Shown: positions 1,733-58,768, numbered from the stretch's first letter. The stretch is DNA of 64,000 nt from Phaeosaccion multiseriatum (GCA_965112735.1 OZ218963.1:1860001-1924000); one strand, 5' to 3'. Translations and numbers: made by a program. Notes: generated by a model not told the origin, from the sequence alone.

Positions 1733-1810
1733 ATGCCTCTTCTTCGACTGCTGGGCATGAGCAATATCTTGGCTGTACTGCTGCTAGGATTCGTCAATAG
1801 TAGCTATGGC
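1733..1810 (+). other. Signal peptide of the giant protein
   Basis: MPLLRLLGMSNILAVLLLGFVNSSYG|QTT: basic residue, hydrophobic core, small residues at -3/-1. The second Met (MSNILAV) is an alternative start. Confidence 0.75.
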
Positions 1811-55800: not shown

Positions 55801-58768
55801 AACATCGAGGGTACAGTAGACGATGACGTGGCAGCCAAGCTAGCCATTGGGGAAGGTCGTCAGGCGGACCTCGAGCAGGAGAGGCTGGAGCTGCAAGCGC
55901 TCAACTCGGAGCGGTTCCGGCATCGATTCTTGGAGAGGAATCGGCCTTGGATTCTGCAACACTTGTCCGATCTCTTGACACCTCGCTCGCTCGAAGGGAC
56001 AGGACCCGACGGTCGCCCGGTGGTGGAGTACATTCGGGATGTGTATGCAGAGCTCATGGCCATGGGAGAGGGAGCACGCCGACCCGGAGACCGCAGCGAC
56101 ATTTCGTCGGATGAGGAGGATGAGCTCGAGGCTCAGCGAAGGAATTGGCCGAGGACGCCTTTGGGGGGGGCGTCGCTGGCCATTGCGAGGCTGTGGCTCG
56201 CCAAGGCCCGCAAGCGTAGGGCGTTTGGAAAGCTTGTGGCGGGAGTGATTCAGGGCAGCAAGGCGGCTCATTGCGCCGTGTGTGAGTGCGCGCAGGGGCA
56301 GCAGGGGCGGCAGCTGCAGGTCAGTCTGGCCACGGATGGAGAGGCGGACGCCTACGCCATCGACCGCATCATCGCTGCGTTTGAGGAGATGTATGGATGG
56401 GACGAGCGCGACTCCAACCTGTGGACGGCCTTTTTTAGGTACGAAACAAAAAAGCAAAGCACTTTCCTAAATGGAAATGAGGGTGTTGGGGAAAGGGGTG
56501 CCGATGAAGTAAGGCTTGAAGGTGCCGATGAAGTAAGGCTTGAAGGTGCCGATGAAGTAAGGCTTGAAGGTGCCGATGAAGTAAGGCTTGAAGGCTGACA
56601 CCGCAAGGGGGAGGGGTGCGCCTTTCATGGCATCGGGGCAGCTCTGGTCGGAGATGGAAGACGAAGGAGAAGGACGCCCCACTTCCACGCGCAATCTTTC
56701 GATTTTCTCACCTCCTTCCTGTTGTTGTTGTTGTTGTTGTTGTTGTTGTTGTTGTTGTTGTTGTTGTTGTTGTTGTTGTTGCTGTTGTTGTTGTTGTTGT
56801 TGTTGTTGTTGTTGTTGTTGTTGTTGTTGTTGCTGTTGTTGCTGTTGTTGTTGTTGTTGTTGCTGTTGTTGTTGTTGTTGTTGTTGTTGTTGTTGTTGTT
56901 GTGATTTGGGTACCTGTTGTTGTTGTTGTGATTTGGGTACCTGTGGTGACCCGAACAGGACCAACGCGGAGTTTGTGACACGCTGCAACATGTGTATGGA
57001 CAGGCTTGAGCAGGAGAGGCTGAGAAGACTCGCCAGGCACCCGGGGGCAGACCGCCAGACCAGAGCAGACGACATGAGCTCGGACGAGGATGGGTCCGAC
57101 GAGGGAGGGGAGGTGTTGTTTGAGGCTGTGGTGGTGACGAGAGACTCTCCCGAGGGCCGCATGGTGCGCAAGTGGCTTGAGGCGGCGCGCAAGAAGTTGG
57201 GGGGCCTGCATCTGTTCCCCAAGGAGGAGGCCCAAGCAGAGATGGAGCGCTATGTGGAGAAGATGCGTCAGCGCAAGCTACGGGGAGGAAAGAAGGCGAT
57301 CGCAGGTGTCACCGACCGGCCCGGTGCCGGTGGCCAAGACCCTCGAGCGAAGAGCTGGGTGGTGGACGTCAATGCCGCCTCTAAGGCCCTTGCTCTGCGT
57401 TGGTTACGCAAGGCAAAGGACAACATCGGGACGAGGTTCCGAGAGCGAGGGGAGAAGCTCCGCGAGCAGGTGTGTGTGTGTGTGTGTGTGTGTGTGTGTG
57501 TGTGGTGATGGGATGGGACGCGAGATGGACAGTGTTGTTTTTGGTCCGGGGGGGGGGAGGGGGGGGTGTATATTAGAGCTTTGAGCTCAGAGTAAGGGAA
57601 TCTGGGGGGGGGAGGGGGTTGGAGGCCTGAGGTGCTCTGGTCATCGTCATTCTTCATTGCGTGCTACATTCCACACACATGCCACCGCCATCGCATCGAT
57701 GGCACTCAACACATGACTGACGCTATGGCACTCCGTCGGTTCGTCTACTCGATTTGCCTTTCGTCATGGTGTGTTTTGGTTTGGGCACACACAGGTGGTG
57801 CTGACGCTCAGCCACATGCCACTGGAGGATGACTGGTTCTTCGGGGCGGAGATGCGAATGGACGGGGGTGACATAACCGAGGCAGGCACGGTGATCGATG
57901 ACGATAGAAGAGCGGCCGATGCAGAGGAGGCTGTCAAAGTGCGCAACATTCAAGCGGACTTGGAGAGGTGCGTTACGTTACGTTACGTTACGTTACGTTT
58001 TCGTACGTTTCGGATGTTGCTGATTGACGAGTGAAAGGAGGGGAGGGGAGGGAGGGGGAGGGGAGATCAGAGGAGGGAAGGGGAGGCAAAAGGGGAGAGG
58101 AGTGGAGGGGGAAACAAAGTCGAGGAGTTGCTTATCTTACTTGGCTACGGGCAGTGGGGGGCGCTACCTCGCCAGTCTTACATGACGCTCACATACATCC
58201 TCCTCTTTGCTCTTCGCTCTTGTTGTGCGACAGATTCATCCAGGGAATGCGAGAGGATATGTCGCGAGAGCGAGACGCCTTTGAAGCGACTCTGCATGAG
58301 GAGGCGGAAACCATCAATGTGCAGATTGAGCTTCGCACGCGAGAGATGCTTAGAATGCGAGACGACACGCAAAAGCGGAACGAGGCGGAGGAGAACGAAG
58401 TGAAGGAGAGAGACGGGGCGGTGCCATCGCTGCTGCTTGACAAGCACCGGAAGGAGCTCGAGGGCATAGATGACGTGATTCGCATGGAGCAGCAGAGCAA
58501 AGAGAAGGAGGCAGTGGAGGCTGAGGCCAAGCTTCGCGCACAGTTCAACCAGAAGGAGGCGCTGAATGAGCAGAGCATCACAGACAGGAAGGTCATGGCT
58601 GATAACAACATCCGTAGGATTGGACGAGAGACAGCCCTGAAGATTAAGAGCGCGGAGCAGGAGTGGCAGAGCCGAGCGCAGCGCTGGGTGGTGGTTGCGG
58701 CCAAGAAGGTGGAGCTCAAGGAGAGGGAGGATGCGGAGGAAGCCGCCAGGCAGAAGCGCCGTCGCTAG
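1733..58768 (+). CDS. Giant (~15,560 aa) multi-pass membrane surface protein: SP, LamG x2, Ig-like, ~66 IPT/TIG with nested EVQ-module blocks, Cys-rich repeats, ~11 TM, cytoplasmic tail
   Basis: Hand-spliced model, all introns GT-AG, phase consistent throughout. Exons: 1733-1962, 2160-2479, 2785-3212, 3395-4221, 4431-11848, 12051-15573, 15774-21745, 21942-22023, 22255-23661, 24266-24443, 24677-24905, 25102-25946, 26426-31624, 31888-34582, 34756-42126, 42381-44277, 44638-45110, 45470-45675, 45921-46078, 46509-46752, 47068-47695, 47926-48104, 48259-48905, 49221-49794, 49997-50332, 50683-52119, 52329-52396, 52748-52918, 53207-53351, 53646-53771, 54296-54435, 54606-54761, 55038-55406, 55653-56438, 56959-57469, 57795-57967, 58234-58768. 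Total 46,683 nt, divisible by 3. Junctions restore domain motifs (LC-R|FG, GTP|GSAAVSVTANG, PVT|VYGDGF). A few acceptors are ambiguous (22255 vs 22162; 47068 vs 47083). Confidence 0.85.
1870..4221 (+). other. Two LamG/concanavalin-A-like (Laminin_G_3-type) domains, exons 1-4
   Basis: Motifs LVSYYSFDG...ITLGGWVK...NAWSFVAVVY...ALFVNG...LRIGG...GAVDDFFVFSTALDESEL, and ALGVWLKP...DTWSHLSV...VSVYHNG...LTIGG.GFDGLVDELELWS...LLAYWKFAEG. Confidence 0.75.
4480..5470 (+). other. Ig/cadherin-like beta-sandwich domains preceding the IPT array
   Basis: LNGHD...VELTQLPRNGTL...LVYIP...DSFAYRV (cadherin-like/bacterial Ig-type pattern), then VQVADVD...LDAANTALEELT...LSVRACD. Confidence 0.45.
23813..24200. 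repeat. (CCTT)n microsatellites, intron 9
   Basis: Two CCTT tracts seen directly, separated by an AT-rich stretch. Confidence 0.95.
26029..26310. repeat. (CCTT)n microsatellite, intron 12
   Basis: About 280 bp imperfect CCTT tract. Confidence 0.95.
27956..31899 (+). repeat. EVQ-module block 1 (10 modules) inserted within an IPT domain
   Basis: Module consensus EVQ-x-V ... GG-x-F-x-L-x-F ... T-x-x-L-x-x-NATA-x-E-V-E-x-ALE-x-L ... V-x-V-x-R ... W-x-VTF ... GDV-x-x-L ... L-x-G ... V-x-V-x-E-x-x-x-G. Confidence 0.85.
33076..35183 (+). repeat. EVQ-module block 2 (5 modules) inserted within an IPT domain
   Basis: Same consensus. Lies between QCVAPPH and GPSVSVRVSVNSG and spans intron 34583-34755. 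Confidence 0.85.
36300..41264 (+). repeat. EVQ-module block 3 (13 modules) inserted within an IPT domain
   Basis: Same consensus. Lies between SCEVPAF and GGVVAVEITMNGQDY. Confidence 0.85.
44349..44575. repeat. (CCT)n microsatellite, intron 16
   Basis: Long CCT tracts. Confidence 0.95.
46107..46340. repeat. (TTG)n microsatellite, intron 19
   Basis: Imperfect TTG tract. Confidence 0.95.
46945..47048. repeat. (TG)n microsatellite, intron 20
   Basis: About 100 bp pure TG tract just upstream of the acceptor. Confidence 0.95.
53500..53590. repeat. (CACT)n microsatellite, intron 29
   Basis: CACT tract. Similar tracts at about 31722-31766 and 63205-63390. Confidence 0.95.
53846..54100. mobile_element. 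MITE-like 255-bp element in an intron
   Basis: Perfect 27-bp terminal inverted repeats: GTCGGCCCCCCGCGGGGCTTCTCGGGC (53846-53872) and its reverse complement (54074-54100). Internal repeated GAAGCC and GGCCTGCGGCC motifs. No clear target-site duplication. Confidence 0.65.
56497..56592. repeat. 24-bp minisatellite, 4 perfect copies (intronic)
   Basis: (GGTGCCGATGAAGTAAGGCTTGAA)x4, no spacers. Confidence 0.95.
56720..56901. repeat. (TTG)n microsatellite, intron 34
   Basis: About 180 bp TTG tract followed by a short duplication (..GTTGTTGTGATTTGGGTACCTG x2). Confidence 0.95.
57795..58768 (+). other. C-terminal E/K/R-rich coiled-coil tail
   Basis: About 200 aa of charged helical sequence, nearly free of Pro, ending EEAARQKRRR*. 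Confidence 0.7.

Follow-up and report, generated by a model that had tools for sequence, protein, structure and literature searches.

A predicted 37-exon gene of Phaeosaccion multiseriatum for a 1.64-MDa multi-pass surface protein of a conserved, unnamed family

Does the plus strand of a stretch of Phaeosaccion multiseriatum DNA (GCA_965112735.1 OZ218963.1:1860001-1924000) carry one enormous gene between positions 1733 and 58768, or several, and what kind of protein would such a gene encode? The window is the whole stretch of 64,000 nucleotides (nt), and all coordinates count from its first letter. Its DNA is ∼60% G+C and eukaryotic-looking, and very long stop-free frames follow one another on the plus strand from ∼1.7 kb to 58.8 kb, the longest stop-free stretches reaching 2,641 codons (4378-12300 and 34272-42194). 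At 60% G+C, stops are expected at a rate of ∼3% per codon and therefore, by simple arithmetic, chance cannot yield frames of 2,641 codons. As judged from the sequence, 1733-58768 is most likely one 37-exon gene, the product of which is predicted to be a member of a conserved unnamed family defined by a module of Cys repeats, ectodomain, 11 hydrophobic helices and tail.

The gene model was built with a dynamic-programming parser that uses codon usage and splice sites, given frame-specific support from tblastn matches to homologues, and was then curated by hand against the family consensus. When the neighbouring genes are excluded, the parse yields one gene. The final coding span (1733..58768, plus strand) has 37 exons and 36 introns, all GT-AG and 122–604 nt long, and comprises 15,693 codons plus TAG. 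The 47 kb of coding sequence is stop-free across 36 consistent splices, and the predicted product has 15,693 amino acids (aa), a mass of 1.64 MDa and an isoelectric point of 4.6. An initial annotation, made from the sequence alone, had joined the plus-strand open reading frames (ORFs) through 36 canonical introns and given a protein of ∼15,560 aa and ∼1.6 MDa. Our own model arrives at the same number of introns, and the two sizes agree within a few exon edges, which are uncertain by ∼100–200 aa in total. The order of parts described there (signal peptide, LamG, IPT array, Cys repeats, multi-pass domain, helical tail) was likewise recovered, as follows:

1733..1810, plus strand: start codon, which is the first ATG to follow an in-frame stop, and signal peptide (MPLLRLLGMSNILAVLLLGFVNSSYG; hydropathy peak 2.1)
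2212..3104, plus strand: LamG-like domain 1, split by intron 2 (Pfam Laminin_G_3, E 5e-8)
3177..4096, plus strand: probable LamG-like domain 2, weak (Laminin_G_3, E 0.043, below the Pfam cut-off; "GVWLKPS"-type motif at the start of exon 4)
5482..28048, plus strand: main IPT/TIG array, 56 domains in tandem at a median spacing of 125 aa, running across introns 5–12, five of which split a domain
28049..41390, plus strand: unnamed-repeat region of ∼4,300 aa, with at least 20 copies or part-copies and 6 interspersed IPT domains (self-comparison and its own profile)
41391..43102, plus strand: four IPT domains close to the membrane, one of them interrupted by intron 15 (42127-42380), collinear with homologue P0006
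43103..45672, plus strand: Cys-rich region of ephrin-receptor-like repeats (Pfam Ephrin_rec_like, E 1.6e-6 and 3.4e-4)
45470..51504, plus strand: conserved family ectodomain of ∼1,300 aa in 9 exons, collinear with the Odontella transcript protein P0165 and with P0006
51505..55737, plus strand: membrane module in 9 exons, a juxtamembrane beta-hairpin and 11 hydrophobic helices (11 hydropathy peaks)
55738..58765, plus strand: tail of ∼640 aa, predicted to be cytoplasmic, with a CxxC...CxxC pair, three basic W-L-x-x-A-R/K motifs and long charged helices
58766..58768, plus strand: stop codon TAG, coinciding with homologue C-termini (Odontella P0165 residue 2720 of 2727)

The introns themselves carry the argument for a single gene. 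Support beyond open frames and splice signals was found for 30 of the 36: eight split a domain at contiguous profile positions, one (intron 14) is spanned by repeat alignments in the self-comparison and 21 are bridged by single homologues. Six introns cut IPT domains whose exon-encoded halves are contiguous on the profile, as with intron 11849-12050 (positions 3-64|65-85) and the longest intron of all, 23662-24265 (1-36|37-77). Intron 13 cuts the unnamed repeat module at profile positions 97|98. Intron 2 (2480-2784) cuts the LamG-like domain; exon 3 opens at profile position 75 of 151, and therefore the first half of the domain must lie in exon 2. Two long BLASTP alignments with P0006 (aa 97–3610 of 3625, 39–40% identity; the query, window aa 12301–15706, follows the numbering of an earlier model version) run across introns 15–36, and the later introns of this group are bridged additionally by Odontella aurita P0165, derived from an MMETSP transcript (aa 42–2720 of 2727). 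Reading through an intron meets a stop within a few codons in nearly every case. The stop-free introns with lengths that are multiples of three, 48906-49220 and 55407-55652, have negative coding scores, and homologues skip both exactly. Retention of either would keep the frame, inserting poly-Arg/poly-Gly or Cys/Val-rich low-complexity peptides.

Hydropathy points the same way. Hydrophobic segments of membrane-helix strength are limited to the N-terminal signal peptide and one cluster of 11 (51862-55737), with no internal signal peptide and no membrane helix outside the cluster anywhere in the gene span, as had been claimed for one signal peptide at the start and one transmembrane region near the end. 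By this computational evidence of domain-splitting introns and homologue bridging, the single gene of the initial annotation is supported. The exons of the final model, all on the plus strand, are:

Exons 1–7: 1733-1962, 2160-2479, 2785-3212, 3395-4221, 4431-11848, 12051-15573, 15696-21745
Exons 8–14: 21942-22023, 22162-23661, 24266-24443, 24578-24905, 25057-25946, 26426-31624, 31888-34582
Exons 15–20: 34756-42126, 42381-44277, 44638-45173, 45470-45675, 45921-46078, 46509-46752
Exons 21–26: 47068-47695, 47926-48104, 48238-48905, 49221-49794, 49997-50332, 50683-52119
Exons 27–32: 52329-52396, 52748-52918, 53207-53351, 53646-53771, 54296-54435, 54606-54761
Exons 33–37: 55038-55406, 55653-56438, 56959-57469, 57795-57967, 58234-58768

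The extracellular part of the predicted protein is dominated by IPT/TIG domains. By region, Pfam returned Laminin_G_3 at 2.8–3.1 kb, IPT/TIG in every large frame from 4.4 to 44 kb and Ephrin_rec_like at 43–45 kb. While 41 stretches pass Pfam individually (TIG per exon down to E 1e-74), a profile iterated on the protein itself brought the total to 66 IPT/TIG domains, the number that had been estimated at first sight. Of the LamG domains placed at the tip, one is firm and the second is weak. The introns that start at 11849, 21746 and 24906 each fall in a different IPT domain and share both their profile position (64-66) and their phase (1), which suggests inheritance through exon or domain duplication. 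The unnamed repeat was followed from a ∼237-aa seed that probably consists of two sub-repeats; over 28049-41390 Pfam returned TIG and nothing for this repeat. The Cys-rich region holds 15–19 Cys per 250 aa and is 45–60% identical to P0006. From 45 to 58.8 kb, across the ectodomain, membrane module and tail, there was no Pfam match.

In the membrane module, the first hydrophobic helix lies at 51862-51918 and the last at 55681-55737. Across an alignment of 51 family modules, all 40 near-invariant residues (columns at least 90% conserved) are kept in the spliced product. Invariant charged and aromatic residues are abundant in the 11-helix domain, including the E in EFSYS, the D/E in DxFxxNxQELxHGW and the R/D in the following loop. 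AlphaFold2, supplied with the family alignment, modelled the helical domain of homologue P0003 (residues 1–610; 40% identical to the window protein) with a pLDDT of 91 and a pTM of 0.88; for the whole P0003 module with its tail the pLDDT was 81. In the model, a juxtamembrane beta-hairpin precedes 11 membrane helices, with a helical insert on the cytoplasmic side following helix 7; a small 4-Cys region with beta structure comes next, and then helices of 40–95 residues. Basic loops (TRLRxPP, WKRxH, KRKFTRRRR and RYRFxxRxxRW) alternate in a positive-inside pattern, which would place the N-terminus of the module outside and its C-terminus inside.

In the tail, the motifs match the family consensus without indels, and residues 937–1162 of the homologue model form helices with coiled-coil-type matches. 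The three W-L-x-x-A-R/K motifs, LWLAKARKRR, KWLEAARKKLGG and RWLRKAKDN, stand at model aa 15207, 15360 and 15436 (∼56.1–57.3 kb). They are basic, recur in the family consensus and are possible binding sites of partner or calmodulin type. The tail had been called signalling-type by the initial annotation; Pfam recognises no signalling domain in it.

The likenesses drawn by the initial annotation were to architecture alone, with no homology shown, and this is corrected here: the C-terminal ∼3,400 aa align collinearly, at 39–47% identity, with individual proteins from diatoms, oomycetes and further protists. The search for orthologues with the membrane region, which had been proposed, was productive. 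Searched against 1.84 billion representatives, a family profile of this region retrieved at least 410 proteins at E ≤1e-3, the longest having 7,785 aa. One exon of the window finds P0001 and P0002 at E 1e-39, and identity to P0006 and to Odontella is 46–47% over 1,000 aa, the closest protein standing at 47%. Diatom members come from Odontella aurita (A0A6U6EV38), Ditylum, Discostella and Skeletonema. Oomycete members come from Pythium brassicae (TYZ61830.1), Aphanomyces invadans (XP_008870714.1, 7,478 aa), Saprolegnia parasitica (XP_012207173.1, 6,655 aa) and Thraustotheca, and others from Chrysoparadoxa, Cafeteria roenbergensis (KAA0165573.1), Cantina and the green alga Prasinoderma. All named members are labelled "hypothetical" or "IPT/TIG domain-containing". 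Neither the family and its locus tags nor IPT/TIG domains of oomycetes or diatoms led to relevant literature, and no paper on any member was found.

TIG arrays were found in the relatives P0177, P0134, P0071 and P0169. P0071 (7,785 aa) and P0145 (7,340 aa) come from one metagenomic contig apiece, the former occupying 23.4 kb of a 25.2-kb contig; this filling suggests uninterrupted ORFs with IPT array, Cys repeats and membrane module. In Cantina, P0169 (5,327 aa), from a Trinity transcript, carries the IPT array and membrane module in one molecule, and the Aphanomyces and Saprolegnia proteins, both from genome annotations, do so as well. Relatives thus unite IPT array, Cys repeats and membrane module, and the architecture is therefore conserved and not a one-off. 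The window protein shares with its relatives the Cys-repeat, ectodomain, 11-helix and tail module, and with several of them an N-terminal IPT array. It differs in the LamG-like domains at its tip and in the 4,300-aa unnamed-repeat block, neither of which was seen in the relatives examined (no dedicated search was made for relatives of the repeat). Its gene also has 36 introns, where some relatives seem to be encoded by one uninterrupted ORF, and the protein is the largest member found, about twice as long as the longest relative.

How does this architecture compare with known systems? Fibrocystin/PKHD1 and the plexin/Met-type receptors resemble the window protein in being membrane-anchored with extracellular tandem IPT/TIG domains. 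These proteins have a single-pass anchor, fibrocystin carrying G8 and PbH1 domains and plexins Sema/PSI and a GAP domain. None of these domains (G8, PbH1, Sema/PSI, GAP) came up when every exon was scanned with Pfam, and the window protein has 11 helices in place of a single-pass anchor. The fibrocystin likeness of the initial annotation thus applies to the IPT architecture and not to membership. The same is true of polycystin-1, which is comparable by analogy in its huge Ig-like ectodomain, 11 helices oriented N-out/C-in and C-terminal coiled coil: PKD, REJ, GPS/GAIN, PLAT and PKD_channel were not detected by Pfam in the window or in the 51 family members, and no polycystin chain is among the Foldseek or VIA matches. 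A third comparison is with the alveolate CRMPs, in which Cys-rich EGF-receptor-type repeats precede a C-terminal multi-pass domain and which are proposed to be contact sensors that trigger exocytosis (PMC9670195). Compared by published architecture alone, CRMPs share the Cys repeats and multi-pass C-terminus with the window protein, but are reported with 5–9 helices, against 11 here, and with Kringle, MAR or GAIN-like parts (PMC9670195).

Profile and fold searches did not place the membrane module in a known family. No PDB chain was retrieved by profile search with it, and Foldseek against PDB gave no significant match for either model (best E 0.04–0.1, TM ≤0.2). The VIA wide search with the full model returned coiled-coil matches to the tail only. 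The VIA values all fall below 8, which that tool treats as noise, and are a lead, not a finding. An Atlas feature search gave sub-threshold leads only. AlphaFold DB clusters matched by the module model contain uncharacterised proteins only, and its fold relatives there presumably include ciliate and dinoflagellate entries, the organisms being read off the accessions. Pfam applied to the C-terminal exons, to whole homologues and to the 51 module sequences gave nothing beyond one weak Meckelin match. Membership in Meckelin (TMEM67) was rejected, since PF09773 occurs in only 1 of 51 members (E 7e-4) and no Meckelin chain is among the Foldseek or VIA matches listed.

Taken as a whole, it is probable that one gene encodes a 15,693-aa multi-pass surface glycoprotein with the parts described, which would act as an adhesion or mechano/ligand-sensing receptor. 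Such a protein would be type-I-oriented, and its stalk of 66 Ig-like domains and ∼20 other modules could give the ectodomain a reach of a few hundred nanometres. The LamG-type, lectin-like tip and the stalk may engage a surface or glycan, and pull or binding could then be passed to the conserved membrane domain, with its invariant acidic and basic residues in or beside the helices. The tail, with its 4-Cys motif, basic amphipathic W-L-x-x-A-R motifs and coiled-coil-type helices, might relay this to cytoplasmic partners, its elements serving oligomerisation or cytoskeletal or signalling partners. A contact, adhesion or force-sensing receptor with a transducing membrane module is the most economical reading. 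The mechanosensor, adhesin and flagellar-filament roles offered by the initial annotation are similarly inferential, and none of the observations made here relates to flagella.

Several points weigh against this account. The function is wholly inferred, with no Pfam family, PDB relative by sequence, significant fold match or paper to anchor it. In the public runs that hold the locus, all from one sample, depth over 1200-7199 is flat across spacer, introns and exons, contigs run through introns and there are no splice joints (apparent "joints" at 2456 are GGA-repeat artefacts); these runs are therefore genomic DNA and lend no transcript support, and internal transcript starts or ends are thus possible. 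Introns 1, 3, 4, 8, 10 and 12 have open frames and splice signals as their sole evidence. The homologues found are at most half as long as the window protein, and none has an N-terminal LamG. Lastly, the spacer between the upstream gene and the ATG of the giant gene, at 582 nt, is no longer than the largest introns, and an internal boundary or promoter therefore cannot be dismissed on the ground of size. The initial annotation's statement that the span holds no internal intergenic-like gap is weakened to that extent; what remains of it is that, leaving aside 25947-26425, all introns of at least 350 nt either split a domain or have a homologue bridging them.

One alternative concerns function. 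The protein could be mainly a passive structural fibre or cell-coat adhesin, with the membrane module an anchor or trafficking device, perhaps TM9SF-like, that neither senses nor transports. Long Ig-like arrays that end in a lectin-like tip are a common design among adhesins, and TM9SF proteins recur in Foldseek against AlphaFold/Swiss-Prot, where they make up 15 of the top 25 matches (E 3.5e-4 to 1e-2); an Atlas shape search also lists a TM9SF cluster. However, TM-scores to TM9SF are 0.09–0.13 by Foldseek and 0.25–0.28 in the Atlas search (0.28 for the cluster), which is no real superposition, and none of the 51 members matches PF02990. TM9SF (EMP70) membership was accordingly rejected. One helix suffices for an anchor, while here 11 helices, a cytoplasmic 4-Cys motif, a coiled coil and the 40 near-invariant residues, some of them charged, are conserved from diatoms to oomycetes. 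This conservation therefore favours an active module, and we regard the passive fibre as unlikely.

A more specific proposal for an active module is that the 11 helices form a very divergent TMEM16/OSCA-TMEM63/TMC fold, with an extra N-terminal helix added to a 10-helix core as in OSCA, so that a force-gated channel or lipid scramblase and an extracellular tether a few hundred nanometres long would be directly joined in one polypeptide. We hold this to be doubtful. The Anoctamin, RSN1_7TM/PHM7 and TMC profiles matched none of the 51 members at E up to 1. If the proposal is true, diatoms, oomycetes and other protists would have in common a one-piece equivalent of the pairing of tip link and TMC.

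Less likely still is that the span contains more than one transcription unit, for example a secreted LamG/IPT giant followed by a separate membrane receptor, or an internal promoter that gives a short membrane-module isoform. The locus is known from DNA runs, spacers in this genome are as short as introns, and many family members are short (1,200–2,700 aa), such as P0003 with 1,167 aa and Odontella P0165 with 2,727 aa. The candidate boundary is intron 12 (25947-26425, 479 nt), which falls between domains, as the others of this size are domain-splitting or bridged. At intron 12, however, the downstream frame opens straight with an IPT domain and lacks a signal peptide, the first in-frame ATG downstream is only reached 483 nt in, and read-through of the upstream exon would overlap the downstream frame by 130 nt. 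The rare unnamed repeat module common to exons 13, 14 and 15 and the lack of an internal signal peptide also argue against separate units, and an additional internal promoter, if present, would be compatible with a full-length product. We find it hardly credible that the locus is no longer a working gene (a pseudogene or silent relic) or that it arose by misassembly of repeated IPT units: the locus is known from DNA runs and repeat-rich genes are prone to misassembly, but 47 kb of coding sequence stays open after 36 splices, the 40 near-invariant residues are intact, the IPT copies are diverged and not identical, and contigs from four DNA runs cover 1200-7199 with zero differing letters, breaking only at short repeats.

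The one-gene model is flanked by two further genes:

3-1151, plus strand: end of an upstream gene, an acidic, Gly/Glu-rich low-complexity ORF with no Pfam family; TGA at 1149-1151, AATAAA near 1333
59727-62526, minus strand: convergent multi-exon DEAD-box helicase gene (Helicase_C E 1e-16, GUCT E 4e-11)

The 3' end of the helicase gene lies ∼960 nt from the giant gene's stop. No tRNA or Rfam RNA was found within the gene span, and antisense ORFs within exons have no Pfam family, leaving no antisense gene in the span.

A number of alternative splice sites were discarded during curation. The donor of intron 3 was moved from 3318 to 3213, with a TACTAAC branch site present; the yeast-type branch-point sequence CTTACTAAC stands at 3341-3349, ∼45 nt upstream of the acceptor. 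An exon start at 54843, which adds 64 aa relative to the family consensus, was replaced by 55038, the exon start at 55527 by 55653 and the donor at 50486 by 50333. A 5-nt "exon" at 56642 gave way to intron 56439-56958, and an optional intron, 33475-33654, was left out. Ab initio parses made without splice profiles or homology fused neighbouring genes and read GTT microsatellites as poly-Val "membrane helices", and were replaced by homology-guided curation. Long intronic microsatellites lie at 24075-24198, 26130-26245, 44471-44572, 46134-46202, 46945-47048, 53501-53584 and 56720-56900. They are of the types (TTCC)n, (CTTC)n, (TCC)n, (TTG)n, (TG)n, (CACT)n and (TGT)n, and in-frame GTT/TTG runs mimic poly-Val helices. 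Intron 34 holds, at 56496-56595, four tandem copies of the 24-nt unit GGTGCCGATGAAGTAAGGCTTGAA, each with a GTAAG donor-like site. Of the words of 44000-50000, 48% occur in a second sample of this organism and 5–6% in two other organisms (public runs X5, X6 and X7). This word sharing may indicate close relatives with a conserved part of the gene in public reads.

At 1.64 MDa, the predicted protein would rank among the largest predicted in a microbial eukaryote, and automated annotation is almost certain to fragment a gene of this size. Should the weak TMEM16/OSCA resemblance be real, the module would add a new branch, with its tether built in, to a major superfamily of mechanosensitive channels. 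The family comprises at least 410 proteins that share a confidently folded 11-helix domain with no Pfam model, solved relative or literature, and its small members (1,200–2,700 aa) make the membrane module experimentally tractable. Diatoms are ecologically dominant, and Aphanomyces, Saprolegnia and Pythium are oomycete pathogens of fish and plants. For these organisms, the family is a concrete candidate for sensing or gripping surfaces, prey or hosts.

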